From Selaginella moellendorffii (lineage: Eukaryota > Plantae > Lycopodiophyta): a DNA stretch of 64,000 nucleotides. Below are positions 994 through 55,838 of the stretch, piece by piece (position 1 is the first letter of the stretch; the number at the start of each line of letters is the position of its first letter). A program made the position numbers and the translations under genes. The notes below the pieces were generated by a model. That model was not told the origin of the DNA, did not search any database, and saw only the letters and a program-made list of their open reading frames with translations. Where the stretch lies: positions 395,075 through 459,074 of the forward strand of contig NW_003314295.1 of NCBI RefSeq assembly GCF_000143415.4, read 5' to 3'.

Positions 994-1359
994 ATGGTGG
1001 CGGTGGACGTTGAGCGGTATGTTGAGCTCAAGCGCATGATCGACGACTTGGCGATCGAGGCTGGTAACAATAGGAGCATCTGGGTGAAACAATACGATAG
1101 CTTCGACTTTGCGGACTATGATCACTGGGCCGAGACCAACAACAAGAGGGCGCTCAGGCCGGACTGCCATTACATGGACGACGAAGTGGCGTTGGATCCT
1201 CCCCATGCCGACCGGATCACGCGGATGGTGGCCGTGGCACTCCAGCAAGAGGAGGAAGACAACAGGAGGCAACTGCCTAAGGAGGTGAACCACTTCACAA
1301 GGCAACTGGCGCTTCAGCAACAACAAGCCGGGCCACCGAGCAAGAGAGCTCGCCACTGA
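994..1359 (+). CDS. Orphan 121-aa protein (ORF121), copy 1, intact
   Basis: ATG 994 to TGA 1359 (366 nt), MVAVDVERYVELKRM...AGPPSKRARH. GC-rich island with ten homologous copies in the window. Confidence 0.6.
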   Translation: MVAVDVERYVELKRMIDDLAIEAGNNRSIWVKQYDSFDFADYDHWAETNNKRALRPDCHYMDDEVALDPPHADRITRMVAVALQQEEEDNRRQLPKEVNHFTRQLALQQQQAGPPSKRARH

Positions 1360-2049
1360 TCGTCGAATCATCCCCTGGAGGGATGATCGAAAACGATCTT
1401 GTATCACAAGCTCTAACAAACTTGTGAACAAAGCAAGCTCCTGCCAAGGATCAAAAACTTTTGTTGTTTGTACTTCATATACCTGGCAATGAAGAGATCT
1501 TTCCAGTTCTATGAGCTTTAGTGGCGTTCCATCTCGCGGAATATGGCTGTGAGTCATTTGGGTCTTCCTTTAGCTAAGAAGCCCTAGCTAGAGCTACATT
1601 ACGAGCGAAGGAAACGTATTGGTGCAAAGAAAATGTGTACAAGTGCTCCAGTGGTGCCTGATCAAGAACATCAATGCTCAAAGTCTATACTGATGAATTC
1701 AACCTTTAAGGAAAAAACATTTGTTTTGTTTTTTGGAAAAAAAACAATGCGCCTACTCCCTCTTCTCAACTTTGTGATTGAGGATAATGGCTTTTCAATG
1801 GTTCTTCTTTTCTTCTTTTCCTTGTTTCTCATCGAATGCTTGTGTTCTTGCTCCCGCTTCACCACTGCCCTTGCAAGTGAAAAACAACCAAACTACTGAA
1901 GTAACTGCTCTGTGCATCATGTTTTCTTCGAATCTAAGTACTATTCTTACGCTCTCTCTGGTTCCACTTTCGAGAACAAACATGAATTTAGAGACGAGTC
2001 ATTTAAAATGAGATCTTTGCTTATAAACTTTTAATAACAGATTAAGGAA

Positions 2050-2265
2050 ATGGAGACTTTTGAGCAACAGGATTTTACCATGCGATTCAGCTGCAGGGTT
2101 TACTCGAGGTGATGGCAAACTCCAGTGTTGCAAATCTCACACTTGCTGCCTTTGGCACTTCTGGCAGTAGTCCCGGCACACCTGGTCGCTTGGAGGTGCA
2201 CAGGAAGTGCCCCTCCACACATACCCCCGCCATAGCCAGGCTCTCCTTGTTGACCACTCCAGGTA
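2050..2265 (+). pseudogene. Detached 5' module of the REase-kinase gene (other copies near 8465-8680, 9585-9800, 16755-16975, 26400-26640, 35765-35985, 42490-42790, 48200-48420, 51287-51490, 58655-58860, 61710-61925)
   Basis: Reads EVMANSSVANLT...VVPAHLVA...GAQEVPLHTYP with frameshifts. The homologous segment at 42490-42790 is contiguous with the kinase-gene body. Confidence 0.5.
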
Positions 2266-2521
2266 AACGAGCAAGTCCATGAGGTGAGCTTGGCCATTTT
2301 GGAGAATATATATTCCATTTCCCACTAAGGCTGTGGGTGGTAATGTTTTTCACAGGGTTAGTAGCCTCACAAACTGTTGTTGATTTCTTCGAACATGGCA
2401 TGGTTTAGATGCTCTAAGACAAAATGGAGACATCGCTTTTTTTCGTCCAAGAGGAGAAACAAAGAACAAACAACATGGTACGTACCTGAGGAAAATGTCT
2501 GAGAAAAGAATGATAAAGAAC

Positions 2522-2728
2522 AAGAAGACGAGGTCGGCAGCCGAGTCCGAGGAGCTCGGGGTGACCGTAAAGATGCACGGGAGCAAGCTCGAGCACATGA
2601 CTAGGAGCCTGCTGGGCTCGCCCGGAGCGATCGTGCAGGGCAGCTTCGATGGATCGCTCAAGGCTAAAGCATCTGAAGAAGAGCTAAGGAAGATCCTCCG
2701 CCTAGCATTTCACTATAATGCCTTCTAG
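2522..2728 (+). pseudogene. Paralogous fragment of the B3 gene C-terminal domain
   Basis: KKTRSAAESEELGVTVKMHGSKLEHMTRSLLGSPGAIVQGSFDGSLKAKASEEELRKILRLAF aligns with the C-terminus of the 39465-40672 B3 protein. Confidence 0.75.
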
Positions 2729-3089
2729 TGGAAAACTGATAAGAACTGATGTCTTGAGATGTATTGTATTTTCCTTTTACACAACAACTATTGGAGCAAT
2801 CAATTTCACTGAACGAAGAAATGTTGGTTTTGGAGGTGGCAACTGTGATGGCGGGTCCTTGTCCTCGTTAGATTTGCTTTTTGACTCTTTGGGACAACTT
2901 TTGGACGTGCTAGCCTCCACTGCATTGATCACAAACAAGCATTGCACTACTTGTCGATGGATCAGGTTATATACAAACTGTTGAGACAAAAGGGAGGCAT
3001 ATATAGCTCTTAGTACGAATATTCTTTATTTTATTCTGGTCTAAGCTGTTTTGCGTTACTTATAATTTACGGTCATACCTTGTATGTCT

Positions 3090-4810
3090 TAAGAAAATAA
3101 TAATAATAATAAAAACATAAAGAGAAATGAAAAATATATTATGATTTAATATTTGAGCTTTTATCCTCATTGAAATGCCACATCCACTCCTAGCTTGCTA
3201 TATCACTCCAAAGGTTCTAGGCATTATAAAATGATAAAAAAATCAATGCTAAAGTAAGGATAAATCTTTTGATTAGGTATATCTTGAAAGTAAATGAATT
3301 GTTTGGCCATGAGGTATAAAATCCTAAACTTCCCTTCTAACATTATAGGTATTAATATAAACTTACTTCAAGGATTATTAGTATTAAAAATATTAGTTAG
3401 GTTTTTAATAATTGACAGCAAAAAGAAATATAAGTTTAAACAAGAAAAATATAAAAGAAATGTTACTTACAATGCTTACAGAAATATGGCAATGAATATG
3501 TGATTTTGCATGGGAGCATTATATATTTACACATGTGCAAATTTATTTTTTTGTTTTGAGTTGCATGCAAAAATATTATGCATCCAATCACTTTTCAATT
3601 GCTATATAAGCAATTAAAATGCCATTGTGTTGTCATGAGATATATTATATATGCATGGGGCATAACAACTCATATTACCATATACACATTATGCCATGTG
3701 ATTTTAGACAATATGATATCACTGCAATTTAATAAGGGTTTTTTTTTCTCATTTTTGTAAGTGCAAATTTATGATGAGATAATTGTTATCATTTCTCTCT
3801 TCTCATTTCTCTTAGTTATAATTCATTTTTCATGGTTATGGCTCATTTTTCACAACTATAGCTTATTTCTTGCAGTTGTGGCTTATTTCTCAGAACTTGG
3901 AGGTGTTATGCACCTTAATTTATTTATTGCACCTTTCATTTTTTGTAATCTGTTTGCAATATGACACTTTAACTTAGTGCCATAATAAGTGTGATTGATT
4001 GGAGTGTAGTGGCAAGTACAATCACTTAGAGTGCAATAATGAGTGCAATCGATTTGAGTGCAGTGGCAAGCTTGATCAATTGGAGTGTAGTGGTAAATGC
4101 AATTAATTGAAGCATAATGATGAGCTCAATCAATTGGAATATAGAGGCAAAACAATTTTTTTGTTTTTTCTCTATTTTGTAATTTTCTTTAACATTCACT
4201 CATGTAAAAATTTCTTCATTTCTTCATTTGTTGCAAAACCATTAACTTACAAAGTATTTTTCATTACCTTTATTAAAGAAAGTGATTAAAGAGCCTATAA
4301 TATTTTAAAATTTAGCTTGCACATTTGAAAAACATCACATAAAAACGTAACCCTATTGACATGTAAAAACAAAATCTAATATGAGATGAAAAAATTGTAT
4401 ATATAGCATTATTTTATGAGTCACACATATATGTTACAATAATTTAAACACATATGTGTTTTATTTTCATATATTTTGCAAATGTGAAAGATTTTTTACC
4501 GGGTTATCTACCTTAGGTACATCTTCCTTCTTGGGAGGTATACCTCCCCCCAAAATACTTCAGAATTTAATAGTGTAAATACATTAAATGAAAATATATT
4601 AAAACTTAAACATGATAATTTAAAAAAAATAACTAAAACTTTAGAAATAATATAGTAAATTGTTATTAAATCATTCATTTCATCTTCTCTTCTAATAAAA
4701 AAGTATGCTTTAAATAACAATTAAAGCTCAGATAATAATTATTATTTAACTTTTATTCAAATTCTTGAAGTGGCACATAAATCATTCTCAAGTTTTGGAT
4801 CAAATTTCAT
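3090..4810. repeat. AT-rich spacer of about 1.7 kb shared by the array units (copies 17750-24245 interrupted, 36775-39460 interrupted, 49220-50880, 62715 onward)
   Basis: Direct sequence similarity among copies; no credible ORF. Confidence 0.8.
3988..4140. repeat. Degenerate 27-bp minisatellite, about 6 units (also 23242-23395, 38727-38812, 50129-50248)
   Basis: Unit approximately GCAATTGATTGGAGTGTAGTGGCAAGT. It appears as LQLIALTTT-like 9-aa repeats in ORF 23224-23448. Confidence 0.75.
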
Positions 4811-4815
4811 CCATT

Positions 4816-6005
4816 CTAGAAGGGAGTGGCATCGTAGAGAGGAAATGCCAGGTTGAGGATCTTCCTCAGCTCTTCCTTGGACACTTTAGCCTTGAGCGAT
4901 CCAGTGGAGCTCCCCTCCACGATTGATCCAGGCGAGCCCAGCACACTCCTACACATGCGCTGGAGCTTGCTCCCCTGCATCTTGAAGCTCATCCCAAGCT
5001 CCTCGGACTCGGCTGCCGACCTCGTCTTTTTGAGCACCAGCGCCACCACTGGCTCGTGGCGCTGCTGCCGCCGCTCCTCCGCCGCCTCTTCTCCGCCTCC
5101 CATCCCTTCTGCCACTCCCTCCTCCTCCTCGCCCGCCACCTCCTGGTTGCACGAGTGTGAGTTCTCCACCCATTCTCTCCTCAGGAGCCCCCTCGTCCTC
5201 TTGGGATTGCGCTCGAAGACGTCGTAGTCATGGACGTCTCCTCCGGTGGCTACTCCGCCGAGTTCTTCGATCTCGATCTCCAGCCCGTCTGGTTCTTTCT
5301 TTGGCGGGAGCAACACTATGTTGGCGGCGTTGGCGCGATCACTGGCGCTTGAATATCTCGACGCGGAACGTGATCATCTCGGAGGAGGAGTTCTCCTTTT
5401 GGAAGACGAGGACGTCTCCCTTGACGAGTTCGTGATGGACGCAGAAGGCTTTCCACCCGGCACCGATCACTGGCTGCATCGTCCAGTTCCATCTCATCCT
5501 CCATTGGTGACCACTCCGGTCGCGGACGATCACCTCGGCTCTCCCGTGCGGCATCATCTTCTTGCAGTAGTTCGAAGGAAGAGTCTGCAGAAAAAAAATA
5601 AAGAAGAAAAGAAAAACGATTAGCAAGTTCTTTGTGAAGATATCGAAGGGAAAAAAGACAAGGATAGCGAAACATAAACCTCGAGCTTGTTCTTCGCTTA
5701 CCATAACGTATGTGCCGCTCACACAGCACTGGTTCAAGACTTTAATGGTGCTGCGACTCTTCTTTGCAAGATGTTGCTGGTACTCCTGCGCGGCTTGCAG
5801 CGCTTCGTGCGAACCTGGCAGCTCCTCGCGATTCCGCCGCTGCCGCTGCTGATTGGAGGGGATGTAACTCGACAGAGGACTGTCTTCCTCGTAAGAACCT
5901 GCGAAGATACGCTCGGACAAATATAAGAAACGAAGTGATGAGAGAAAAAAAGCGAGAAGGAAAGCTCTGACCAGATGGATAAGCTTCGCCGCCGCTCGAC
6001 TCCAT
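4816..6005 (-). pseudogene. B3-domain (REM/VRN1-like) gene, frameshifted copy
   Basis: Exons 6005-5972, 5898-5702 and 5584 onward, with GT-AG introns of 73 and 117 nt. B3 motifs VIVRDRSGHQWRM and IGAGWKAFCVHHELVKGDVLVF. A 17-nt deletion near 5346 relative to the 39.9-kb copy gives a stop at 5339, just after the B3 domain. Confidence 0.85.
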
Positions 6006-6347
6006 AGCTGCGCTCTCGCTCTTCTTCTTGCTTGCTGAAGGAAAAACCTCGCTGAGAGAGCGTCCGGTCTACTAGTACGTCCCAATGATGAATGATCGTG
6101 CGCCGTCGGATTGGCTCCATCCGACGGCCACCATTCACGTACGAGGAAAGAAAATGCTCGTATCTTTCCAGTAGCCGTCGCTTTCCATTTCGTGATCTTT
6201 GCTCCATTCTAGAGGCAACCTTGGAGACTTGCTTGGATGGCTTTGCATTAATAAAAAATCCACAGTACCAATCAAAACTTCAGCTCTAAAGAGGCGAGAT
6301 TATCACCTTCCAGGTATCGAGTGTGTTCTTCGTTTCTATAGATGATA

Positions 6348-8061: not shown

Positions 8062-8230
8062 CTAGAAGGCATCATAGTGAGGAAATGCCAGGCGGAGGAT
8101 CGTCCTCAGCTCTTCTTCGGATGCTTTAGCCTTGAGCGATCCATCGAAGCTGCCCTGCACGATGCGCTCGACCTTGCTCCTGTGCATCTTTACGAGCTCC
8201 TCAGACGCTGGGCTGCCAACCTCGTCTTCT
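8062..8230 (-). pseudogene. B3 C-terminal paralogue fragment with deletions
   Basis: Reverse complement of 2522-2728 with internal deletions. Confidence 0.7.
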
Positions 8231-10485
8231 TGTTCTTTATCATTCTTTTCTCAGACATTTTCCTCAGGTACGTACCATGTTGTTTGTTCTTCGTTTCTCA
8301 TCTTGGACGAAAAGAAGCGATGTTTCCATTTCGTCTTAGAGCATCTAAACCATGCCATGTTCAAAGAAATGAACGACAGTTTATGAGGCTACTTACCACC
8401 CACAGCCTTAGTGGGAAATGGAATTTATATTGCCAAGCTCACCTCATGGACTTGGTCGTCGCCCTGGAGTGGTCAACAAGGAGAGCCTGGCTATGGCGGG
8501 GATATGTGTGGAGGGGCACTTCCTGTGCACCTCCAAGCGACCAGGTGTGCCGGGACTACTGCCAGAAGTGCCAAAGGCAGCAAGTGTGAGATTTGCAACA
8601 CTGGAGTTTGCCATCACCTCGAGTAAACCCTGCAGCTGAATCGCATGGTAAAATCCTGTTACTCCAAAGTCTCCATTTTCTTAATCTGTTATTAAAAGTA
8701 CTTCCAAAGAACTCATTTTAAACGACTCGTCTCTAAATTCATGTTTGTTCTCGCAAGTAGAACCAGAGAGAGCGTAAGAATAGTACTTTGATTCGAAGAA
8801 AACATGATGCACACAACAGTTCCTTCAGTAGTTTGGTTGTTTTTCACTTGCAAGGGCAGTGGTGAAGCGGGAGCAAGAACACAAGCATTCGATGAGAAAC
8901 AAGGAAAAGAAGAAAAGAAGAACCATTGAAAAGCCATTATCCTCAATCACAAAGTTGAGAAGAGGGAGTAGGCGCATTGTTTTTATCAAAAAAACAAAAC
9001 AAACGTTTTTTCCTTTCATCAGTATAGACTTTGAGCATTGATGTTCTTGATCAGGCACCGCTGGAGCACTTGTACACATTTTCTTTGCACCAATAATACG
9101 GCATACCCTGGCAGCTAACAACGCAGCAACGTTTCCTTCGTTCATCATGTAGCTCTAGCTAGGGCTTATTAGCTAAAGGAAGACCCAAATGACTCACGGC
9201 CATATTCCGCGAGATGGAACGCCACTACGGCTCATAGAACTGGAAAGATCTCTTCATTGCCAGGTATATGAAGTACAAACAACAAAAGTTTGTGCTCCTT
9301 GGCAGGAGCTTGCTTTGTTCACACGTTTGTTGGAGCTTGTGATACAAGAAGTTTCGATCATCACGTACCATGTTGTTTGTTCTTCGTTTCTCCTCTTGGA
9401 CGAAAAGAAGCGATGTTTCCATTTCGTCTTAGAGCATCTAAACCATGCCATGTTCAAAGAAATGAACGACAGTTTGTGAGGCTACTAACCCTGTGAAAAA
9501 CATTACCACCCACAGCCTTAGTGGGAAATGGAATATATATTCTCCAAAATGCCCAAGCTCACCTCATGGACTTGGTCGTCACCCTGGAGTGGTCAACAAG
9601 GAGAGCCTGGCTATGGCGGGGATATGTGTGGAGGGGCACTTCCTGTGCACCTCCAAGCGACCAGGTGTGCCGGGACTACTGCCAGAAGTGCCAAAGGCAG
9701 CAAGTGTGAGATTTGCAACACTGGAGTTTGCCATCACCTCGAGTAAACCCTGCAGCTGAATCGCATGGTAAAATCCTGTTACTCCAAAGTCTCCATTTTC
9801 TTAACCTGTTATTAAAAGTACTTCCAAAGAACTCGTTTTAAACGACTCGTCTCTAAATTCATGTTTAATCTCGCAAGTAGAACCAGAGAGAGTGTAAGAA
9901 TAGTATTTTGATTCGAAGAAAACATGATGCACACAACAGTTCCTTCAGTAGTTTGGTTGTTCTTCACTTGCAAGGGCAGTGGTGAAGCGGGAGCAAGAAC
10001 ACAAGCATTCAATGAGAAACAAGGAAAAGAAGAAAAGAAGAACCATTGAAAAGCCATTATCCTCAATCACAAAGTTGAGAAGAGGGTTGTTTTTTTCAAA
10101 AAAACAAAACAAACGTTTTTTCCTTTCATCAGTATAGACTTTGAGTATTGATGTTCTTGATCAGGCACCACTGGAGCACTTGTACACATTTTCTTTGCAC
10201 CAATAATACGGCATACCCTGGCAGCTAACAACGCAGCAACGTTTCCTTCGCTCATAATGTAACTCTAGCTAGGGCTTATTAGCTAAAGGAAGACCCAAAT
10301 GACTCACGGCCATATTCCGCGAGACACGGCTCATAGAACTGGAAGGATCTCTTCATTGCCAGATATATGAAGTACAAACAACAAAAGTTTGTGCTCCTTG
10401 GCAGGAGCTTGCTTTGTTCACACGTTTGTTGGAGCTTGTGATACAAGATTGTTTTCGATCATCACTCCAGGGGATGATTCGACGA

Positions 10486-10851
10486 TCAGTGGCGAGCTCT
10501 CTTGCTCGGTGGCCCGGCTTGTTCTTGCTGAAGCGCCAGTTGCCTTGTGAAGTGGTTCACCTCCTTAGCCAGTTGCCTCCTGTTGTCTTCCTCCTCTTGC
10601 TGGAGCGCCACGGCCACCATCCGCGTGATCCGGTCGGCATGGGGAGGATCCAACGCCACCTCGTCCTCCATGTAATGGCAGTCCGGCCTGAGCGCCCTCT
10701 TGTTGTTGGTCTCGGCCCAGTGATCATAGTCCGCGAAGTCGAAGCTATCGTATTGTTTCACCCGGATGCTCCTATTGTTACCAGCCTCGATCGCCAAGTC
10801 GTCGATCATGCGCTTGAGCTCAACATACCGCTCAACGTCCACCGCCACCAT
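10486..10851 (-). CDS. ORF121 copy 2, intact (plus-arm subtype, inverted)
   Basis: 366 nt from ATG to TGA; EDNRRQL/NHF subtype. Confidence 0.6.
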   Translation of the reverse strand: MVAVDVERYVELKRMIDDLAIEAGNNRSIRVKQYDSFDFADYDHWAETNNKRALRPDCHYMEDEVALDPPHADRITRMVAVALQQEEEDNRRQLAKEVNHFTRQLALQQEQAGPPSKRARH

Positions 10852-12421
10852 GCTCTGCTCGTGAGAAGTTCTTCTCGTCTCCCTTTTACAATCACAAACC
10901 CTATACGAAACAAACGAATATACTACGTTTTTCGCCAAATATTGTTTCACCATCTTTAAGATAAAGGTTTTCAGCAACTTAACCAGTTTACTGAAATATT
11001 TTAAAATCTGTTTTATGCTCTCGACCGATTTGAAGAGCTTAGGAGCGAGGAGCCAGAAATTCGTGGATTCAACCAGAGTTTCGAAGCGATTAGAAGCGGA
11101 ATTTCACTCGCTTCTGTCCCTGGATTTTTCCCAGCTTTCACTGAGCTCGTTGATGGCGTCAACTCTCTGCTTCCAGGACTTAATCTCCTCGCCATCCGTC
11201 GAGCATCATGCGTCCAATCTGGTTCTCTCCCCACCAGTCCAAGTCGTCCAGCAAGGGTTTCTTCCACCAGCTTTCGCTCATGGGACCTGGTAATCAATTC
11301 GCTGGATAAAGCTCCCACGAAAATTTGCCTTGCATTCCGCAAAATCGGGGAGAAGTTGACGAGATCGAGCACTTCACAAGAAGGAAGAATTTCTTGGGTC
11401 TGAGCTGGATAGCTTTTGGATTTGGGAAGGGATACTTTTTTTTTTCACCTTTATATTTCGAAAGGAAATGGTTTATGGTGGTTTATTTATCCATAAGCTT
11501 CTGGAGTCATTGTTTATTCTATCTGTGGAAAGCTCTTTGTTAGCCTCATCGATGCTATTGTTCTTGTAGAAGGCATCCCTCCTCAAGCTTCACAATCAGT
11601 AACACCTGCCCGACTTGCAAAGAAGTGTAACGTGTTTGGAGCACAATTTTCTATCCTTTCTCAGGCACTTGAAAGTGCCATCCTTGCTTGTTCGGGAAAA
11701 AGAAAGAGAGAGAAGCATCATCTACATAACGCATTAGGTTGAGCTTTGATGGTCTTGCGAAATTGAGAACCGCCTGGTGCCGCAAACATTCGTTTCCTCC
11801 CAAATGTACTCCAAAGTCTCAATTGTTAAAAGTTTATTATATAAGCACACTTACCAGAGAGAAGAATAGTAATTGGCACACAACAGTTACTTCAATAGTT
11901 TGGTTGTTTTTCACTTGCAAGGGCATTCGATGAGAAACAAAGAAAAGAAGAACATTGAAAAGCGATTCTCCTCAATCACAAAGTTGAGAAGAGGAAGTAG
12001 AAATTCGTTTTTTCCTCTCTTAACCTGTCCTCCACGTCTTCCATAATTCCTAACTGATGTTCCACATTTCATAATCTCTGTCCCATATCTTAGTAATTGA
12101 GTATTGATGTTCTTGATCAAGCCCCCCAAGGTCACTGGAGCACTTCTACACATTTTCTTTGCACCAATAATACGGCATATCTTGGCAACTAACAACGCAG
12201 CATCGTTTCCTTCGCTCGTAACATAGCTCTAGCTAGGGCTAAAGGAAGACTCACGGCCATACTGAGATGGAACGCCACTAAAGCTCAAACACTAGAACTG
12301 GAAAGATCTCTTCATTGCCAGTATATGAAGTACAAACAACAAAGGTTTTCTGCTCCTAGTTTTAGTAATGCTTGTGATACAAGATTGTTTTCGATCATCC
12401 CCCAAGGGGCTGATTCGACGA

Positions 12422-12777
12422 TCAGTGGCGAGCTCTCTTGCTCGGTGGCCCAGCTTGTTGTTGCTGAAGCGCCAGTTGCCTTGTGAAGTAGTTCACCTCC
12501 TTAGCCAGTCGCCTCCTGTTCGCTTCCTCCTCTTGCTGGGCTACCATCCGTGTGATTCGGTCGGCATGGGGAGGATCCAACGTCACCTGTCGTCCATGTA
12601 ATGGCTGTCCGGCCTGAGCGCCCTCTTGTTGTTGGTCTCGGCCCAGTGATCATAGTCCGCGAAGTCGAAGCTATCGTATTGTTTCACCCGGATGCTCCTA
12701 TTGTTACCAGCCTCGATCGCCAAGTCGTCAATCATGCGCTTGAGCTCAACATACCGCTCAACGTCCACCGCCACCAT
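12422..12777 (-). pseudogene. ORF121 copy 3, frameshifted
   Basis: 356 nt: a 1-nt deletion near 12588 and a 9-nt deletion near 12539. Confidence 0.7.
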
Positions 12778-13464
12778 CTTCGATCTGCTCCGCTCGTGAG
12801 AAGTTCTTCTGGACTCCTTTTTACAATCACTAACCCCATACAAAACAAATGGATATGCCACTTTTTTGCCAAATATTCTTTCATTATCTTTAAGACAAAA
12901 AAAAGGTTTTAACCGGCTTACTGAAATATTTTTAAATTTGTTTTATGGAGCAGCGATCTCCACAGATTTGAAGAGCTAGGAGTGAGGAACTAGAAATTCG
13001 TGGATTCAACCAAAGTTTCGAAGACTTGTTTTGTCCCTGAATTTTTTCCATCTTTCACTGAGCTCATTGATGGCATCAACTCTCTGCTTTCAGGATTTAA
13101 TCTGTCCAAGCATCAATCCCGTCCTCAGTCCAAGTCGTCCAGCAACAGTTTCTGCCACCAGCTGGGACGCTCTGCATGTATAGCCCCTGGTAATTAATCC
13201 GCTGGAGAAAGCTCCCACGAAAATTCGCCTTGCATGTGCGCGGCTGCGGGGTTAAAAGGAGACTGGATAAACATGCACACACTTGTCAATTACAAAATCA
13301 TGCAAGGAGAGTAGGGGAGAAAAACAAGAACAGTACACACACACCGAAACAAGAAACACCAGGGGAAAAAAAAAAAGTGGCAGCCATGCCTCCAATGATG
13401 CCCTCTAGATCCGTAATTGTACATGGCACCTCGATCTCGTGCAGGGCGCTTCATCCAAACGCAA

Positions 13465-30948: not shown

Positions 30949-30967
30949 TAGTTTATATATGAAGTAG

Positions 30968-42790: not shown

Positions 42791-43401
42791 CAATTGTTAA
42801 AAGTTTATTATATAAGCACACTTACCAGAGAGAAGAATAGTAATTGGCACACAACAGTTACTTCAATAGTTTGGTTGTTTTTCACTTGCAAGGGCATTCG
42901 ATGAGAAACAAAGAAAAGAAGAACATTGAAAAGAGATTCTCCTCAATCACAAAGTTGAGAAGAGGAAGTAGAAATTCGTTTTTTCCTCTCTTAACCTGTC
43001 CTCCACGTCTTCCATAATTCCTAACTGATGTTCCACATTTCATAATCTCTGTCCCATATCTTAGCAATTGAGTATTGATGTTCTTGATCAAGCCCCCCAA
43101 GGTCACTGGAGCACTTCTACACATTTTCTTTGCACCAATAATACGGCATATCTTGGCAACTAACAACGCAGCACCGTTTCCTTCGCTCGTAACATAGCTC
43201 TAGCTAGGGCTTATTAGCTAAAGGAAGACTCACGGCCATACTGAGATGGAACGCCACTAAAGCTCAAACACTAGAACTGGAAAGATCTCTTCATTGCCAG
43301 GTATATGAAGTACAAACAACAAATGTTTTTTGCTCCTAGTTTTAGTAATGCTTGTGATACAAGATTGTTTTCGATCATCCCCCAAGGAGATGATTCGACG
43401 A

Positions 43402-43767
43402 TCAGTGGCGAGCTCTCTTGCTGGGCGGCCCGGCTTGTTGTTGCTGAAGCGCCAGTTGCCTTGTGAAGTAGTTCACCTCCTTAGCCAGTCGCCTCCTGTT
43501 CGCTTCCTCCTCTTGCTGGAGCGCCACGGCCACCATCCGCGTGATCCGGTCGGCACGGGGAGGATCCAACGCCACCTCGTCCTCCATGTAATGGCAGTCC
43601 GGACTGAGCGCCCTCTTGTTGTTGGTCTCGGCCCAGTGATCATAGTCCTCAAAGTCGAAGCTATCGTATTGTTTCACCCGGATGCTCCTATTGTTACCAG
43701 CCTCGATCACCAAGTCGTCAATCATGCGCTTGAGCTCAACATACCGCTCAACGTCCACCGCCACCAT
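43402..43767 (-). CDS. ORF121 copy 7, intact (minus-arm subtype)
   Basis: 121-aa ORF in the supplied track. Confidence 0.6.
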   Translation of the reverse strand: MVAVDVERYVELKRMIDDLVIEAGNNRSIRVKQYDSFDFEDYDHWAETNNKRALSPDCHYMEDEVALDPPRADRITRMVAVALQQEEEANRRRLAKEVNYFTRQLALQQQQAGPPSKRARH

Positions 43768-44404
43768 CTTCGATCTGCTCCGCTCGTGAGAAGTTCTTCT
43801 GGACTCCTTTTTACAATCATTTTTTCGCCAAATTATTCTTTCATCATCTTTAAGATAAAAAAAAAGGTTTTAACCAGCCTACTGAAATATTTTAAATTTG
43901 TTTTATGGAGCTCCGCCGATTTGAAGAGCTAGGAGCGAGGAGCCAGAAATTCGTGGATTCAACCAGAGTTTCGAAGACTTGTTTGGCCCCTGAATTTTCC
44001 CATCTTTCACTGAGCATCAACTGTCTGATTCCAGGATTTAACCTCGTCATCATCAACGCGTCCAATCCCGTCCTCTCAGTCCAGCAAGAGTTTCTTCCAC
44101 CAGCTGGGACGCTTTGCATGTATAGCCCCTGGTAATTAATCCGCTGGAGAAAGCTCCCACGAAAATTCGCCTTGCATGTGCGCGAAGATGCTGCTGCGGG
44201 GTTAAAAGGAGACTGCATAAACATGCACACACTTGTCAATTACAAAATCATGCAAGGAGAGTAGGGGAGAAAAACAAGAACAGTACACACACACCGAAAC
44301 AAGAAACACCAGGGAAAAAAAAAGGTGGCAGCCACACCTCCAATGATGTCCTCTAGATATGTAATTGTACATGGCACCCTCGATCTCGTGCAGGGCGCTT
44401 CATC

Positions 44405-46035
44405 CGCATGGGAGGCAGGACAATGGTCATCAGATCAAGCCTTTTCCACGAATGCCTGCCAGTCTTCGTAACCTTTGGCTGACCGTCTTCAATCACGTAG
44501 TCCCTCAGCAGCTGTAGTTGCGACAGCGTTGTGTGGGCAGACATGAACGAAGACTGGTGTGGTACAGGGTGCGCCATCTATAACCACGGCGTTGGGGCTT
44601 TCAGGCATGGCCTCCTGGCGTACAACAAAAAGCTTTCAACAAAATCTTTGTGCCCATATGAAACATTTCAAGGAAAGATGTGTAATTCAATAGTGAGAAG
44701 GAAAAGAAAAGACAAGTCCTAAGCAAGAGAAAAATTGCTCAAACACAGCAGCCACGGGCATTGCAGCAGAAGGCCCAGCTCTGGAATGTAGGAGTCCACA
44801 ATGTCAAGCCTCCGCCTCACGAGCCTCAAGTTGGGCCTGAAGGTGACGAAGGACATATGGTTGTTCACAACAGTGAATGTCCGATCACTTGTTGAGAGGA
44901 GGCGTAGTCCTCAAAGAGCTCCCCACGCGCAGAAGAAAAGTCAATCTGGGCGAGATTGGCCAGGGAAGCATCCATCTTCCCGGATGCGAAGACCTTGCTT
45001 GTAAACATAGTGCGGATGTACCTGGAAGCAAAAGCTATCGTCGGAGCGAGAATTTTGGACGGCTGTAGAAAACTTTGTCCGCCAACTCCTCACGCCCCGT
45101 CACCAGGAAGCTCGACACTGCTCTTTGCTGTCTATCCGTCACAGTGCCCAAATCCTGGAAAAAATGCGGAGCTATGCCAACACAGACGTAAAGCCGTGCC
45201 AGGAAATGTGCTGCTGAGAAATCTCCGGCCGTAAGTGCTCCTGAAATTCCCCGCCTGGTGCTTCCTCTTGAACGCTTTCAACAGCTCCGAAGGCTTCCAG
45301 GCATCCATATGGAAAGTCACAAACCGGCCTCGTCCATTGTCGCCTCAGCGGCATCAGCACCATTCATCCGGGATGGACTTGTAAAGAGGACCGTCCTTCC
45401 TCGCGTGCCTCTATATCCTTGAAAGCTATCGTCCACAAGGAGCCACGTCCCTGCTAAGCTCAACAGGTCTGTCGGAACTTTATACGAGAACCGGACCTCT
45501 CCGCCCGGCGAGATGATGATGAAGGCCCTGGCGTCCGCAAACAGTTGCACTAAAACGTATGCTCCAGCTAGTTCCGCGTCGCTGAGGAGCTCGCGAACGA
45601 AGTACCAGATGCAGCACGACTTTCCTATCCCCGGATTACCGGAGATGTGCGCGAAGGTGCTGCGGGCGTGTCTCAGCTGACGATAGATCTTCTCGTAAGA
45701 CTTGCGAACGAGGATGTCGGCAGGGTTGGCTGTGAGCTCGGCTATGACGGCAGGGAGCCTCAGAAATCCTTCCGCATCCCGACCCCTGCACAGGTGCGAG
45801 CTGGTGTCCGGCGGGAAAATCTTGTCCTTGGCAAAAGGGACTGCGTAAACACGCACACACTTGTCAAAATTACAAATCATGGAAGAGCAGAGGGAACATA
45901 CACACAACGAAAACAAAAAGACTGTATTGAAATTCCTGAGATACATCTCCACTCCAGGAGCTAGGACAAAGTCAGGGCAGCACTGGCGCTTCAGCCACTT
46001 GCGGATGGCAATCTCATGCGGCACATTAATTAACA
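44405..46035 (-). pseudogene. Crinkler/RHS-type NTPase-REase gene, most complete copy
   Basis: Intact Walker A ISGNPGIGKS, Walker B WLLVDD, TVLFTSP, FHMDAWKPSEL. Then, across frameshifts, IAFASRYI, RGELFEDYA, IVDSYIPELGLLLQC and VFVHVCP, consistent with a CR-REase core. Confidence 0.8.
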
Positions 46036-46047
46036 ACCGTGAGCATG

Positions 46048-46180
46048 AACTTCTCACGAGCAGAGCAGATTGAAGATGATGGCGGTGGACGTTGGGCGGT
46101 ATGTTTCGACGACTTGGCGACGATAGTTTCGACTTTGCGGACTATGATCACTGGGCCGAGACCAACAACCAGAAGGCGCA
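46048..46180 (+). pseudogene. Heavily deleted ORF121 remnant (11th copy)
   Basis: atgatggcggtggacgttgggcggtatgtt...gactatgatcactgggccgagaccaacaac with two large internal deletions. Confidence 0.75.
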
Positions 46181-47181
46181 GGCAATCCCATCCTCTCACT
46201 TGCACTCGATTGAGTATGATCAGCAGCATCACCACCACCAAATCAGACCACTGTTTTGATTCTCTGCTTTCACTTCCTCGACCAATTCTACCCTGGAAAA
46301 CAGTTTGAGCGATGGAAAAAAAAGCGAGGCCTAGAAAACACTTCCGCTTCGTCGTGAAGATGCTGGTTAGTATCTCATCGGAAAGGGAGGAGCGATTCCA
46401 ATCTTGACCTCGAACATCAAACGCTTCTCTTTGTCCTCCAGTGGAGGAACCATTCTTTTGGTCACGTGAGAATCCGTGACGTCGATGCCTTGGCCAGGAA
46501 TGGTACGAGCTCGACATATCTACACAGGACTAAAAGCAAAGCTGTGAGTGACAAAACCATCACCTCGAACATAACACTGGAAAACTAAATTTGAAGGAAG
46601 AAAACCAGCTTACTGTCGATCTTGCTGCAGACCTTGCAAATTCCCTCTTCCTGGTGCCACTTAAGAAACTCTTGGAACAAATCCGAGAGTGGCCTCATTG
46701 CGTTACTAGCCTTCCCAGAGCTATCCAGCTCCAACCCAAGAAATTTTTCTTTCTTGCGGAGTGCTGGACCTCGTCAACTTCTCCCTGATTTCGAGGAATG
46801 CGAGGCAAATTTTCTTAGGAGCTTTCTCCAGCGGATTGATTACGAGGGGCTATGCATGCAAAGCGTCCCAGGAGAGAAAGCTGATGGAAGAAACTCTTGC
46901 TGGACGACTTGGACTGGTGGGGAGAGAACGAGATTGGACACATGATGCTCGACGGACGGCGAGAAGATTAAATCCTGGAAGCAGAGAGTGAAAGCTGGGA
47001 AAAATCAAGGGACAGAAGCCAGTGAAATTCCGCTTCCAATTGCTTCGAAACTCTGGTTGAATCCGAGAATTTCTGGCTCCTCGCTCCTCAAATCAGTGGA
47101 GAGCATAGAACAAATTTTATAATATTGAAATTGTTTTGTATAGGGTTTGTGATTGTAAAAGAACTTCTCGAGCAGAGCGAG

Positions 47182-47484
47182 ATGGTGGCGGTGGACGTTG
47201 AGCGGTATGTTGAGCTCAAGCGCATGATCGACGACTTGGCGATCGAGGCTGGTAACAATAGGAGCATCCGGGTGAAACAATACGATAGCTTCGACTTCGC
47301 GGACTATGATCACTGGGCCGAGACCAACAACAAGAGGGCGCTCAGGCCGGACTGCCATTACATGGAGGACGAGGTGGCGTTGGATCCTCCCCATGCCGAC
47401 CGGATCACGCGGATGGACTTCACAAGGCAACTGGCGCTTCAGCAACAACAAGCTGGGCCACCGAGCAAGAGAGCTCGCCACTGA
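47182..47484 (+). CDS. ORF121 copy 8, 100 aa, with an in-frame 63-nt deletion
   Basis: RITRM-DFTRQL junction; frame and C-terminal PPSKRARH preserved. Confidence 0.5.
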   Translation: MVAVDVERYVELKRMIDDLAIEAGNNRSIRVKQYDSFDFADYDHWAETNNKRALRPDCHYMEDEVALDPPHADRITRMDFTRQLALQQQQAGPPSKRARH

Positions 47485-48676
47485 TCGTCGAATCATCCCC
47501 TGGAGTGATGATCGAAAACAATCTTGTATCACAAGCTCCAACAAACGTGTGAACAAATCAAGCTCCTGCCAAGGAGCACAAACTTTTGTTGTTTGTACTT
47601 CATATACCTGGCAATGAAGAGATCTTTCCAGTTCTATGAGCCGTAGTGGCGTTCCATCTCGTGGAATATGGCCGTGAGTCATTTGGGTCTTCCTTTAGCT
47701 AATAAGCCCTAGCTAGAGCTACATTATGAGCGAAGGAAACGTTGCTGCGTTGTTAGCTGCCAGGGTATGCCGTATTATTGGTGCAAAGAAAATGTGTACA
47801 AGTGCTCCAGTGGTGCCTGATCAAGAACATCAATACTCAAAATCTATACTGATGAGTTCAACCTCTAAGGAAAAAACGTTTGTTTTGTTTTTTTGAAAAA
47901 AACAATGCGCCTACTCCCTCTTCTCAACTTTGTGATTGAGGATAATGGCTTTTCAATGGTTCTTCTTTTCTTCTTTTCCTTGTTTCTCATCGAATGCTTG
48001 TGTTCTTGCTCCCGCTTCACCACTGCCCTTGCAAGTGAAAAACAACCAAACTACTGAAGGAACTGTTGTGTGCATCATGTTTTCTTCGAATCAAAGTACT
48101 ATTCTTACGCTCTCTCTGGTTCTACTTGCGAGAACAAACATGAATTTAGAGACGAGTCGTTTAAAATGAGTTCTTTGGAAGTACTTCTAATAACAGATTA
48201 AGAAAATGGAGACTTTGGAGTAACAGGATTTTACCATGCGATTCAGCTGCAGGGTTTACTCGAGGTGATGGCAAACTCCAGTGCTGCAAATCTCACACTT
48301 GCTGCCTTTGGCACTTCTGGCAGTAGTCCCGGCACACCTGGTCGCTTGGAGGTGCACAGGAAGTGCCCCTCCACACATATCCCCGCCATAGCCAGGCTCT
48401 CCTTGTTGACCACTCCAGGGTGACGACCAAGTCCATGAGGTGAGCTTGGCCATTTTGGAGAATATATATTCCATTTCCCACTAAGGCTGTGGGTGGTAAT
48501 GTTTTTCACAGGGTTAGTAGCCTCACAAACTGTCGTTGATTTCTTCGAACATGGCATGGTTTAGATGCTCTAAGACGAAATGGAGACATTGCTTTTTTTC
48601 GTCCAATAGGAGAAACGAAGAACAAACAACATGGTACGTACCTGAGGACAATGTCTGAGAAAAGAATGATAAAGAA

Positions 48677-48874
48677 CAAGAAGACGAGGTCGGCAGCCAG
48701 TCCGAGGAGCTCGGGGTGACCGTAAAGATGCACGTCAAGCGCATGACTAGGAGCCTGATGGGCTCGCCCGGAGCGATCGTGCAGGGCAGCTTCGATGGAT
48801 CGCTCAAGGCTAAAGCATCTGAAGAAGAGCTGAGGAAGATCCTCCGCCTGGCATTTCACTATGATGCCTTCTAG
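48677..48874 (+). pseudogene. B3 C-terminal paralogue fragment
   Basis: Homologous to 2522-2728, with frameshifts. Confidence 0.7.
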
Positions 48875-50882: not shown

Positions 50883-51286
50883 NNNNNNNNNNNNNNNNNN
50901 NNNNNNNNNNNNNNNNNNNNNNNNNNNNNNNNNNNNNNNNNNNNNNNNNNNNNNNNNNNNNNNNNNNNNNNNNNNNNNNNNNNNNNNNNNNNNNNNNNNN
51001 NNNNNNNNNNNNNNNNNNNNNNNNNNNNNNNNNNNNNNNNNNNNNNNNNNNNNNNNNNNNNNNNNNNNNNNNNNNNNNNNNNNNNNNNNNNNNNNNNNNN
51101 NNNNNNNNNNNNNNNNNNNNNNNNNNNNNNNNNNNNNNNNNNNNNNNNNNNNNNNNNNNNNNNNNNNNNNNNNNNNNNNNNNNNNNNNNNNNNNNNNNNN
51201 NNNNNNNNNNNNNNNNNNNNNNNNNNNNNNNNNNNNNNNNNNNNNNNNNNNNNNNNNNNNNNNNNNNNNNNNNNNNNNNNNNNNNN
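50883..51286. other. Assembly gap (404 N)
   Basis: Run of N. By analogy with other units, the B3 and kinase bodies (about 3 kb) would lie here. Confidence 1.
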
Positions 51287-52090
51287 GGCTATGGCAGGGA
51301 TATGCATGGAGGGGCAATTCCTGTGCACCTTCACAAGCAACTAGGCGTGATGGGACTACTGTTATAAGTGCCACTACATCAAAGGCAACAGTGAGATTTG
51401 CAGCACTGGAGTTTGCCATCACCTCAAATGCAATTGTATCGCCCCTGCAGCTGAATCACGTGGTAAAATCCTGTTACTCCAAAGTCTCAATTGTTAAAAG
51501 TTTATTATATAAGCACACTTACCAGAGAGAAGAATAGTAATTGGCACACAACAGTTACTTCAATAGTTTGGTTGTTTTTCACTTGCAAGGGCATTCGATG
51601 AGAAACAAAGAAAAGAAGAACATTGAAAAGCGATTCTCCTCAATCACAAAGTTGAGAAGAGGAAGTAGAAATTCGTTTTTTCCTCTCTTAACCTGTCCTC
51701 CACGTCTTCCATAATTCCTAACTGATGTTCCACATTTCATAATCTCTGTCCCATATCTTAGCAATTGAGTATTGATGTTCTTGATCAAGCCCCCCAAGGT
51801 CACTGGAGCACTTGTACACATTTTCTTTGCACCAATAATACGGCATATCTTGGCAACTAACAGCGCAGCATCGTTTCCTTCGCTCGTAACATAGCTCTAG
51901 CTAGGGCTAAAGGAAGACTCACGGCCATACTGAGATGGAACGCCACTAAAGCTCAAACACTAGAACTGGAAAGATCTCTTCATTGCCAGGTATATGAAGT
52001 ACAAACAACAAAGGTTTTGTGCTCCTAGTTTTAGTAATGCTTGTGATACAAGATTGTGTTCGATCATCCCCCAAGAGGATGATTCGACGA

Positions 52091-52456
52091 TCAGTGGCGA
52101 GCTCTCTTGCTCGGCAGCCCGGCTTGTTGTTGCTGAAGCGCCAGTTGCCTTGTGAAGTAGTTCACCTCCTTAGCCAGTCGCCTCCTGTTCGCTTCCTCCT
52201 CTTGCTGGAGCGCCACGGCCACCATCCGCGTGATCCGGTCGGCACGGGGAGGATCCAACGCCACCTCGTCCTCCATGTAATGGCAGTCCGGACTGAGCGC
52301 CCTCTTGTTGTTGGTCTCGGCCCAGTGATCATAGTCCTCAAAGTCGAAGCTATCGTATTGTTTCACCCGGATGCTCCTATTGTTACCAGCCTCGATCACC
52401 AAGTCGTCAATCATGCGCTTGAGCTCAACATACCGCTCAACGTCCACCGCCACCAT
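52091..52456 (-). CDS. ORF121 copy 9, intact (minus-arm subtype)
   Basis: 366 nt; protein differs from copy 7 only at AGLPSK versus AGPPSK. Confidence 0.6.
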   Translation of the reverse strand: MVAVDVERYVELKRMIDDLVIEAGNNRSIRVKQYDSFDFEDYDHWAETNNKRALSPDCHYMEDEVALDPPRADRITRMVAVALQQEEEANRRRLAKEVNYFTRQLALQQQQAGLPSKRARH

Positions 52457-53141
52457 CTTCGATCTGCTCCGCTCGTGAGAAGTTCTTCTGGACTCCTTTT
52501 TACAATCACTAACCCTATACAAAACAAATGGATATGCCACTTTTTTGCCAAATATTCTTTCATTATCTTTAAGACAAAAAAAAAGGTTTTAACCGGCTTA
52601 TTGAAATATTTTTAAATTTGTTTTATGGAGCAGCGATCTCCACAGATTTGAAGAGCTAGGAGCGAGGAACTAGAAATTCGTGGATTCAACCAGAGTTTCA
52701 AAGACTTGTTTTGTCCCTGAATTTTTTCCATCTTTCACTGAGCTCATCGATGGCATCAACTCTCTGCTTTCAGGATTTAATCTCCTCGTCATCCGTCCAA
52801 GCATCAATCCCGTCCTCAGTCCAAGTCGTCCAGCAAGAGTTTCTGCCACCAGCTGGGACGCTCTGCATGTATAGCCCCTGGTAATTAATCCGCTGGAGAA
52901 AGCTCCCACGAAAATTCGCCTTGCATGTGCGCGGCTGCGGGGTTAAAAGGAGACTGCATAAACATGCACACACTTGTCAATTACAAAATCATGCAAGGAG
53001 AGTAGGGGAGAAAAACAAGAACAGTACACACACACCGAAACAAGAAACACCAGGGGAGAAAAAAAAAGTGGCAGCCATGCCTCCAATGATGTCCTCTAGA
53101 TCCGTAATTGTACATGGCACCTCGATCTCGTGCAGGGCGCT

Positions 53142-54825
53142 TCATCCAAACGCAATTAAAGCAAGCTTTTGCATGCGGTTCAGAACTTCCCTCTCCTCTC
53201 TTTCAAATGCTTCCCTGAAGCCCTTGCGTGAGTCGTCGTCCATGGGAGGCAGGACAATGGTCATCTGGGGAATAGGCAGATCAAGCCTTTTCCACGAATG
53301 CCTGCCAGTCTTCGTAACCTTTGGCTGACCGTCTTCAATCACGTAGTCCCTCAAACCCATGAAACTCCCCGCTTGCTTGATGCTTAACTCCTGGATTATA
53401 ATTTATCATGTTCACAAGCTCCCCATTCCCCAGCACATCCCTGTATCGCCTCTTGAACGCTTTCAACAGCTCCGAAGGCTTTTAGGCATCCATATGGAAA
53501 GTCACAAACTGGGCCTCATCCATTGTCGTCTCAGCGGCATCAGCACCATTCCGGGATGGACTTGCGAAGAGGACCCTCCTTCCTCGTGTGGCTCTATATC
53601 CTTGAAAGCTATCGTCCACAAGGAGCCAAGTCCCTGCTAAGCTCAACAGGTCTGTCGGAACTTTAGATCTCTCCGCCCAGCGAGATGATGATGAAGACCC
53701 TGGCATCCACAAACAGTTGCACTAAAATGTATCTCCAGCTAGTTCCGCATCGCTGAGGAGCTCGCGAACGAAGTACCAGATGCAGCACGACTTCCTATCC
53801 CCGGATTACCGGAGATGTGCGCGAAGATGCTGTGGCCGTGTCTCAGCTGACGATAGATCTTCTCGTAAGACTTGCGAACGAGGATGTCGGCAGGGTTGGC
53901 TGTGAGCTCGGCTATGACGGCAGGGAGCCTCAGAAATCCTTCCGCATCCCAACCCCTGCACAGGTGCGAGCGGGTGTCCGGGGGAAAATCTTGTCCTCGG
54001 CAAAAGGGACTGCATAAACAAGCACACACTTGTCAAAGTTACAAATCATGGAAGAGCAGAGGAAACATACACACAACGAAAACAAAAAGACTGTACCTCG
54101 AATGATATGCTCTGCCCCGGCGTCGAACTTGACACGGTTTAAGCCATCGTCCACGCTCATCCGGCTTCTTGTAAAAGAAGCTTAGGGCGCCAGCCGTAAG
54201 AACCTCTCCGACCCGCACTTTGCCATTCTTTAGACAGAACTTGAGCTTGTCATCCATCCATGCGAAAGTACACGATGCCACTCCTTCCTCATCCTCTTAC
54301 TCATCGCCCTCGTTCGCTTCCCACAGCCTCACTGAACCATAGTTTTTGTGAGAGCTACCTATAGAAAATGAGACGAAACAAAACCCATGGCTGCTGCTCT
54401 GCTGCTGCTCTCCATTGTCTGAAAAGAAAGCAATGAGATTTGTCAAAAGATTGCTTTCAGCAATATTCTCTCCTTTCACTGCACAGGCCAGCAGCAGCAC
54501 TAATAGAGAAGCAAGCATCTCTCCATCCCAAAATGAAACAGATAAATGCTTTTTGTGGGTTCCAGCTGAAGAAGAATCCATCGATTTTGTTACGATCATG
54601 TGAGAGAGCACTTACCTTGCAAGTCCTTCTTGCGGAGTAAAATTCCTAGAGCGTAGAAACAACATCTACGACTTTGTAAAGTTTAAAATTTTGAACTAAG
54701 AATGGAGAGAGAAAAGCTTACTTACGACCAGAAAAGTCTCGAGAGTGAAAATAAAGAAGAAAAGGGATACCACTCACAAGTTTGAGATTCCTGAGATACA
54801 TCTCCACTCCAGGAGCTAGGACAAA
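53142..54825 (-). pseudogene. Crinkler/RHS-type NTPase-REase gene, internally deleted copy retaining 5' exons
   Basis: Same lesions as the 13.5-kb and 28.1-kb copies. Keeps the N-terminal exon SSHKNYGSVRLWEANEGDE*EDEEGVASCTFAWMDDKLKFCLKNGKVRV. Confidence 0.75.
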
Positions 54826-55472
54826 GTGCAATAAATAATGACTCCAGAAGCTTATGGATAAATAAACCACCATAAACCATTTCCTTTCGAAAAATGAAGG
54901 TGAAAAAAAAGTATCCCAAATCCAAAAGCTATCCAGCTCCGACCGAAGAAATTCTTCTTTCTTGCGGAGTGCTCGATCTCGTCAACTTCTCCCCGATTTT
55001 GCAGAATGCAAGGCAAATTTTTGTGGGAGCTTTATCCAGCAGATTGATTACCAGGTCCCAGGAGCGAAAGCTGGCGGAAGAAACTCTTGCTGGTCGACTT
55101 GGAGTGGTGGGGAGAGAACAAGATTGGACGCATGATGCTCCGACGGATGGCAAGGAGATTAAATCCTAGAAGCAGACAGTACGAGCTCAGTGAAAGCTAG
55201 GGACAGAAGCGAGTGAAAATCCGCTTCCAATCGTTTCGAAACTCTGGTTTTATACGCCATCACGAATATCTGGCTCCTCACTCCTGAGCTCTTCAAATCG
55301 GTGGAGAGCATAAAACAAATTTAGTAAACCGGTTAAGTTGCTGAAAACCTTTATCTTAAAGATGGTGAAACAATATTTGGCGAAAAACGTAGTATATCCG
55401 TTTGTTTCGTATAGGGTTTGTGCTTGTAAAAGGGAAACTAGAAGAACTTCTCACGAGCAGAGCAGATCGGAG

Positions 55473-55838
55473 ATGGTGGCGGTGGACGTTGAGCGGTATG
55501 TTGAGCTCAAGCGCATGATCGACGACTTGGCGATTGAGGCTGGTAACAATAGGAGCATCCGGGTGAAACAATACGATAGCTTCGACTTCGCGGGCTATGA
55601 TCACTGGGCCGAGACCAACAACAAGAGGGCGCTCAGGCCGGACTGCCATTACATGGAGGACGAGGTGGCGTTGGATCCTCCCCATGCCGACCGGATCACG
55701 CGGATGGTGGCCGTGGCACTCCAGCAAGAGGAGGAAGACAACAAGAGGCAACTGGCTAAGGAGGTGAACCACTTCACAAGGCAACTGGCGTTTCAGCAAC
55801 AACAAGCCGGGCCACCGAGCAAGAGAGCTCGCCACTGA
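55473..55838 (+). CDS. ORF121 copy 10, intact
   Basis: 366 nt from ATG to TGA. Confidence 0.6.
   Translation: MVAVDVERYVELKRMIDDLAIEAGNNRSIRVKQYDSFDFAGYDHWAETNNKRALRPDCHYMEDEVALDPPHADRITRMVAVALQQEEEDNKRQLAKEVNHFTRQLAFQQQQAGPPSKRARH

Follow-up and report, generated by a model that had tools for sequence, protein, structure and literature searches.

A 121-codon reading frame repeated through a duplicated region of the Selaginella moellendorffii genome: coding character, gene conversion and neighbouring gene fragments

Why does one short reading frame stay open in most of its copies while the genes beside it are broken? This question is raised by a 64,000-nt stretch of DNA from the lycophyte Selaginella moellendorffii (NCBI RefSeq assembly GCF_000143415.4, contig NW_003314295.1, positions 395,075–459,074 of the forward strand; hereafter the window), in which an open reading frame (ORF) of 121 codons and 366 nt, here called ORF121, occurs many times. 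The initial annotation of the window regarded it as an orphan and proposed it as a candidate antidote, regulator or partner of nucleases encoded by neighbouring genes of the Crinkler-RHS (CR) type. From the analysis described here, ORF121 is, on balance and with moderate confidence, a real single-exon protein-coding gene of a small lycophyte-restricted family, which may act as a nuclear adaptor or regulator and whose uniformity in the window comes partly from gene conversion.

The copy on the minus strand at 43767–43402 (c07), which is A-type and also serves as the reference for the other searches and for the predicted fold, was used as the blastn query against the window. It matched ten copies, all of them complete or almost so, and one remnant, in agreement with the first count. 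Seven of the ten are open and exactly 366 nt long: c01 (994–1359, plus strand), c02 (10486–10851, minus), c05 (27061–27426, minus), c06 (29415–29780, plus), c07, c09 (52091–52456, minus) and c10 (55473–55838, plus). An eighth, c08 (47182–47484, plus), is open with 100 aa after an in-frame loss of 63 nt, ORF nucleotides 236–298. Two copies are frameshifted: c03 (12422–12777, minus) has a 1-nt deletion at ORF nucleotide 190 together with a 9-nt deletion at 240–248, and c04 (15711–16072, plus) has a 4-nt deletion at 78–81. The remnant (46076–46179, plus) consists of ORF nucleotides 1–30 and 101–160 and adjoins the P-loop NTPase gene fragment at 45320–46057. The two subtypes distinguished at the outset are also seen in the aligned copies. 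Subtype A, with the signature EANRR[R/Q]L..NYF, comprises c03, c05, c07 and c09, and subtype B, with the signature EDN[R/K]RQL..NHF, comprises c01, c02, c04, c06 and c10; c08 is of B type as well. The copy count refers to the sequence outside an assembly gap at 50883–51286, in which further copies could lie hidden. This gap, which begins 3.4 kb after c08 and ends 805 nt before c09, is crossed by no ORF121 copy and by no 700-nt flank analysed; its left edge is inside a long B-type unit (a homologue of 923–4775) and its right edge inside an A-type 3′ flank.

ORF121 is a genuine coding-type frame. In every open copy the GC contents of the first, second and third codon positions (GC1, GC2 and GC3) are 0.63, 0.35 and 0.75, with a flank GC of 0.41–0.46, and this composition resembles that of a B3-domain ORF in the window (0.56, 0.40 and 0.66). 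When the two subtypes are compared, identity rises from 0.86 to 1.00 at the ATG, and the tract of low divergence ends about 15–55 nt after the stop codon, indels resuming within about 55 nt. The start context and the stop are kept in every copy, the Met with a purine at −3 and G at +4 being invariant. Per about 366 nt, 33 distinct gap intervals are counted upstream of the ORF and 19 downstream of it, compared with 4 within it, which bears out the impression that the immediate flanks carry many indels. The density of the flanks predicts 22 intervals in the ORF instead of 4 (P = 3e-6), so that the comparison of indel density suggested initially gives clearly unequal values, and two of the four ORF121 indels are in frame. 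Taken with the fixed differences between subtypes, such changes are 5- to 10-fold rarer in ORF121 than in its flanks.

A relative of ORF121 exists outside the window. A HMMER scan of 1.84 billion representative proteins returned one relative, XP_024515048.1, also from S. moellendorffii (phmmer E = 1.5e-44; residues 1–114 of the query against 229–344). The description as an orphan is thus not quite accurate, and it stands as far as the lack of a recognisable domain is concerned. XP_024515048.1 is a protein of 346 aa annotated as "probable polygalacturonase At1g80170," whose last 118 residues match ORF121. In a global alignment the two are colinear from Met229 to the terminal His, with 73% identity over 116 columns, and are separated by two in-frame indels, a 2-residue insertion after the first helix and a 5-residue deletion in the Q-rich stretch, both in XP_024515048.1. 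The core motif, the Q/E-rich helix and the basic end (SKKPRH, corresponding to SKRARH in ORF121) are common to both. The replacements are conservative, with a mean BLOSUM62 score of +0.65 versus −0.28 for random single-base nonsynonymous changes (p = 2.5e-4), and the mismatches spare a 50-residue core (7/50 versus 24/66 elsewhere, p = 0.01). Purifying selection at the protein level is thus seen between family members in these conservative, core-sparing replacements. Unlike a very young de novo ORF, ORF121 has a mature coding composition and a relative of this identity, and it is not recent.

The tail of XP_024515048.1 differs from the window copies in being annotated as the end of a polygalacturonase model. 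Residues 2–217 of this protein correspond to the C-terminal half of a polygalacturonase, which reads straight into the ORF121 homologue with its own Met at 229, whereas the window copies are without such a piece. Since no polygalacturonase pieces were found in the window, the ORF121 module is independent. Judged from its sequence, the RefSeq model is probably a chimera of a polygalacturonase half and an ORF121 module and should probably be split. Further searches for relatives gave little: a word search with ORF121 among proteins of 67–212 aa was blank, a word search with region 229–346 of XP_024515048.1 among proteins of 190–605 aa recovered only XP_024515048.1 itself, and scans of viral, prokaryotic-genome and metagenome contigs found no ORF121 relatives.

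What, then, keeps the copies in the window so alike? Across the split between A and B, the deepest among the copies, fixed differences occupy 4 of 352 sites in the ORF versus 66 of 607 in the flanks (p = 7e-10), and one of them is synonymous versus about 8 expected (P = 0.003). Because the synonymous sites are too alike across subtypes, selection at the protein level alone cannot account for the similarity. The history of c09 is instructive in this respect. Upstream, it agrees with c05 at 105 of 106 informative sites, and from −50 to +378 it agrees with c07 at 31 of 32 (p = 2e-28). The c07-like tract extends from about −50 to +378/+439 relative to the ATG, and the sequence is c05-like again from +466 to +629. 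A c07-type ORF inside c05-type flanks means that gene conversion homogenises the ORF. Copy c03 is a mosaic of c05-like and c07-like segments. Short conversion tracts over the ORF keep the copies alike and lower the apparent indel density too, and the preservation noticed in the first reading is partly an effect of concerted evolution. The locus is a worked example of how an ORF in a duplicated cluster may look selectively kept while much of the signal is gene conversion.

The anatomy proposed for the protein, namely an N-terminal helix, an aromatic and acidic core, a Q/E-rich helical tail and a basic end, is borne out by the alignment and by AlphaFold2. The core carries the acidic/aromatic motif SIRVKQYDSFD[FY]xDYDHW..TNNKRAL.PDCH..EDEVALDPPHADRITR. 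From a shallow alignment AlphaFold2 predicts helices at residues 6–22, 42–49 and 69–111, the last being long and confident (pLDDT 76–93). The C terminus ends in K-[KR]-x-R-H in XP_024515048.1 and in all window copies except c05 (KRAHH), and in all of these its residues fit the monopartite nuclear-import pattern K-[KR]-x-[KR]. By this pattern, ORF121 is probably imported into the nucleus through its basic tail, and we infer from the anatomy that it may be a small adaptor or regulator. No known domain was recognised, as had been remarked at first: in Pfam, searched at E up to 10, the single match was FIMAH (E = 0.08), which we attribute to chance, no meaningful match came from NCBIfam, PHROGs or PADLOC, a profile search of PDB sequences brought up nothing beyond the polygalacturonase part and p32 (E = 0.39), and the Rfam covariance models had 0 matches at gathering score in the whole window.

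Several observations weigh against the view that ORF121 is a functional gene. Among the window copies, 12 synonymous and 26 nonsynonymous events are counted, which is indistinguishable from the 25.6% synonymous expected from the mutational spectrum of the flanks (p = 0.25). The dN/dS check proposed at the start thus yields a neutral outcome, and the caution given with it, that purifying selection among the copies is not demonstrated, was well placed. The mean pairwise NG86 value of 0.44 overstates selection, as the pairs are non-independent and mutation bias is ignored. Variable sites are spread over the three codon positions as 11/12/15, and in subtype A the ORF and its flanks are similarly variable (20/356 versus 49/789, p = 0.79). 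A figure of 160.7 events expected in the ORF at the flank rate is inflated by the upstream sequence of c06, which is not homologous, and is given no weight here. Gene conversion alone could explain much of the deficit of indels and substitutions. Exact look-ups of all eight open copies in a collection of 15 billion proteins returned nothing, and the sole outside relative came from a protein database, where broken relatives are invisible, an ascertainment bias. As for the predicted structure, the conserved core (residues 25–68) is of low confidence (pLDDT <50), and a Foldseek search of the fold against the PDB found nothing. Moreover, the ten copies represent a few block duplications plus gene conversion and not ten independent trials. 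Present-day constraint on individual copies looks relaxed, as expected of a redundant multi-copy family.

In the reading of ORF121 as a lycophyte gene family, the frame encodes a helical protein of 121 residues, which begins with a short helix, continues through a strongly conserved acidic/aromatic core and a long amphipathic helix rich in Q and E, and ends in the K-[KR]-x-R-H tail. The protein would enter the nucleus through this tail, where the conserved core may bind a partner and the long helix may self-associate. The copies would have arisen by inverted duplication around a P-loop NTPase gene fragment and by tandem block duplications, one of them of about 25 kb. Two causes would keep the ORF open amid decaying surroundings: long-term purifying selection on the protein, shown by the coding composition and by the conservative, core-sparing divergence from XP_024515048.1, and re-homogenising conversion tracts, shown directly for c09 and c03. 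The data establish the coding nature, the family membership and the conversion, whereas the nuclear location and the adaptor role are conjectural. Such a locus is similar to those of orphan small genes in segmental-duplication clusters of plants, which also have no domain, no relatives beyond one lineage, inverted and tandem local copies, conversion mosaics, and intact and broken copies mixed. If correct, this reading would add, in a small way, to the known lineage-restricted genes of plants a family of proteins specific to lycophytes and so far unannotated, in which a core of 50 residues is sharply conserved and a nuclear location is probable.

The arrangement of the copies can be traced in the window. 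Four colinear modules are present, each consisting of an A-type ORF121 on the minus strand, a P-loop NTPase fragment on the minus strand and a B-type ORF121 on the plus strand, so that eight of the ten copies form inverted pairs around four NTPase fragments. For example, module 1 is an inverted repeat of 1.4 kb, in which the A-type unit (11876–13235, minus), composed of the ORF and homologous flanks, and the B-type unit (15233–16631, plus) are arms about 75% identical to each other. The homologous flanks of ORF121, rich in indels, cover about 460–560 nt upstream and about 550 nt downstream. Between the modules, which duplicate one another colinearly, identity is 92–98%, and modules 2 and 4 lie within a tandem duplication of about 25–26 kb (26640–38058 versus 51663–64000, 95–99% identity). 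The remaining pair, c01 and c02, brackets a B3 gene instead of an NTPase fragment. The ten copies trace to a handful of events, an inverted duplication around the NTPase fragment and block duplications. A stretch of about 0.9 kb found in modules 1 and 4 (equivalent to 14583–15509) is missing from module 2.

The NTPase fragments, all on the minus strand, were read piece by piece. They are located at 13844–14505 in module 1, with a frameshift within the Walker A stretch and in-frame stops, at 28469–29118 in module 2 and 53512–54160 in module 4, both split over frames, and at 45320–46057 in module 3, which has the longest open piece (Walker A GNPGIGKS, Walker B LLVDD) and is then truncated. Every fragment is thus truncated or frameshifted, as had been stated of the CR neighbours; in detail, all four are truncated, three of the four are split over frames, and they end about 100 codons past the NTPase. 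Their motifs, in pieces, are GNPGIGKS, LLVDD/LLMDD, VLF[AT]SPS and FHMDAWKPSELL, an order resembling that in the NTPase of Crinkler-RHS-type proteins. Matches to known families are all sub-threshold (AAA_16, E = 0.003; nSTAND3 and NPHP3_N, E = 0.018; Trypano_RHS, E = 0.33), the AAA_16 and Trypano_RHS hints being those of the module 3 fragment, and a word search with the NTPase ORF among annotated proteins of 135–430 aa found no relatives. In the ORFs between and beside the copies no REase-fold (PD-(D/E)xK) nuclease domain was found; a PDDEXK_12 hint (E = 0.28) in a 265-aa ORF at 60101–60898 was discounted, this being a junk-like ORF antisense to a PPR gene. Pfam searches of the ORFs upstream of the NTPase pieces (14384–14695 and 46026–46517) detected no ubiquitin-like header domain. 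Membership of these fragments in the CR class is accordingly unproven, the resemblance being one of motifs.

An intron-like block, rich in pyrimidines, about 100 nt long and with ...TTTATGCAG as its end, is present in two copies in module 1, at about 14350–14440 and at 13250–13360, with equivalents in modules 2–4. One copy immediately precedes the NTPase exon, the other opens the upstream flank of the A-type unit, and the two match with scores of 72–77 versus a shuffle maximum of 29. The 5′ flank was also considered as a decayed copy of the NTPase exon from GK... and LLLDD-like strings seen by eye. In comparison with shuffles, only the block of about 100 nt in the A-type flanks was upheld and nothing for the B-type flanks, and the candidate was rejected.

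Which other explanations may account for ORF121? A decaying former coding segment, non-functional here, could owe its uniformity and open frame to recent duplication and GC-biased gene conversion. We consider this unlikely. It would agree with the neutral synonymous to nonsynonymous ratio, with a subtype A in which the ORF is as variable as the flanks, with two frameshifts, one 21-codon deletion and one remnant among eleven loci, with the conversion demonstrated above in an ORF that is the GC-richest part of its unit, and with the fact that no gene model or transcript-derived protein is present in public collections. However, the low-divergence tract begins at the ATG and stops shortly past the stop codon, start context and stop are kept in all copies, and there are a strong GC3 periodicity and a conservative, core-sparing divergence from XP_024515048.1; the lack of any nonsense substitution in 38 events is a weak argument in the same direction (P = 0.23). 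Decay is possible for individual copies and fits the deep conservation poorly. The boundary at the ATG bears also on the idea that a larger gene, with upstream exons in the 5′ flank, has ORF121 as its terminal exon, whether as the C-terminal tail of a CR-type NTPase or joined as in XP_024515048.1, an idea to which we assign a very low probability. Divergence and indels at the level of the flanks, including copy-specific deletions of 9–31 nt, reach right up to the ATG, and about seven A/B differences in the final 58 nt before it would all be nonsynonymous, although the frame is open for 20–45 codons upstream in all copies and most have an AG acceptor-like site at about −59. This AG is missing in c03 and deleted in c07, and the Met with its context is invariant. 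The A-type copies lie about 1.07 kb downstream of an NTPase fragment on the same strand, and the intron-like 100-nt block is common to the NTPase exon boundary and the A-type flank, as a shared gene structure would have it. The sole database relative, too, forms the C-terminal end of a longer model, whose frame runs on through the residues preceding the Met; against this, the polygalacturonase family at large is without the tail, and XP_024515048.1 is its sole match in 1.84e9 proteins. Alternatively, ORF121 may travel as cargo or accessory gene with an element that is mobile or captures gene fragments (Helitron or Pack-MULE-like), spreading along with it and landing beside unrelated gene pieces. 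The copies are indeed multiple, in both orientations and always amid gene fragments (NTPase, C-terminal-like B3 pieces of the o8077 family, PPR), one homologue is fused to half a polygalacturonase, and fragments of retrotransposon reverse transcriptase are nearby. Nevertheless, this too appears improbable: inverted matches are short, at chance level and none at the ends of the shared units, which speaks against terminal inverted repeats, no transposase or Rep/helicase was seen, colinear block duplications explain the copies, and no relatives were found in the other genomes, viruses and metagenomes scanned.

There remains the proposal that first drew attention to the locus, which makes ORF121 the antidote, regulator or partner of the CR NTPase-nuclease genes next to it and has selection maintain it on their account. 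Its appeal lies in the four inverted pairs flanking P-loop NTPase fragments, in the remnant that abuts one of these, and in the motif order GNPGIGKS, LLVDD, VLF[AT]SPS, FHMDAWKPSELL, which resembles that of CR/RHS NTPases and is accompanied by the faint Trypano_RHS hint. As in toxin-antidote or toxin-immunity pairs, a small ORF stands in tight linkage with a larger gene whose family includes toxic nucleases. However, ORF121 has no intact toxin partner: no nuclease domain was detected in the neighbouring ORFs, and the NTPase fragments are all dead, leaving no present activity to neutralise. The linkage is a single ancestral adjacency multiplied by block duplication and not an independent recurrence, and c01, c02 and XP_024515048.1 are without a CR neighbour. 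The fragments beside ORF121 resemble CR proteins in that they read, in pieces, as a P-loop NTPase whose Walker A, Walker B and later motifs stand in an order like that of the CR/RHS class; they differ from them in having no detected header or REase and only matches below family thresholds, and ORF121 itself resembles no CR domain. CR proteins have been reported in land plants, with an architecture of a Ubl header, a P-loop NTPase, a helix-turn-helix domain and an REase nuclease (PMC5289972, summarising Zhang et al. 2016), and the literature examined describes no antidote against CR proteins of this type. A nuclear tail of ORF121 would suit nuclear-acting CR proteins. On this evidence the proposed partnership was not upheld, and we hold it to be quite unlikely. 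A more elaborate and still less probable version, close to speculation, would make ORF121 the dedicated nuclear partner (antidote, chaperone or targeting subunit) of a plant-resident selfish CR-type NTPase-nuclease element, in which case, with equally slight probability, its survival beyond the toxic gene would reflect a continuing need for it on the part of the host or of the elements that remain. If this were true, ORF121 would be without precedent in free-living plants as a described small cognate partner of the Crinkler-RHS class. The locus would have a bearing on the tolerance of free-living eukaryotes to Crinkler-like toxins only if the CR link were functional.

The strand opposite to ORF121 was also considered. 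Antisense ORFs of 180–238 aa, longer than ORF121, overlap every open copy (841–1557, 10414–10959, 27007–27549, 29298–29852, 43330–43932, 47005–47682, 52019–52615 and 55356–55910). As the true coding strand they were rejected on account of their L/R/V/H/P-rich composition, their copy-dependent ends, the lack of any Pfam match, and a high GC content at their first and not their third codon position, and they are judged a by-product of the codon composition of the sense strand.

Other genes and repeats are present in the window. The B3 DNA-binding domain (PF02362) is found in ORFs at 39465–40949 and 5339–6085, and PPR repeats in an ORF at 33249–33677 on the plus strand; from these domains, the window is plant DNA. 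The B3-domain gene at 39465–40949 (minus) is a 494-codon open frame including in-frame intron-like stretches, and the one at 4819–6270 (minus) is split over three frames. Broken pieces resembling the C-terminal part of the B3 protein (the o8077 family) stand tail to tail with B-type ORF121 units; about eight are present, for example at 2140–2716, 8077–8586, 16853–17390 and 48296–48862. Further PPR-repeat pieces are located at 59128–60104 on the plus strand in several frames. Retroelements are inserted at 18095–22671 and about 30094–32000, with RVT_1 fragments at 20311–20727 and 31361–31774, and the insertion at 18095–22671 splits the long B-type unit that lies downstream of c04. Stretches rich in AT (GC 0.28–0.36) occur at 22–24, 30–32 and 56–58 kb. 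In the 3′ flanks of the ORF121 units, a conserved palindrome around CTAGCTAG is found about 190 nt past the stop codon, as at 12224–12241 and 16282–16297.

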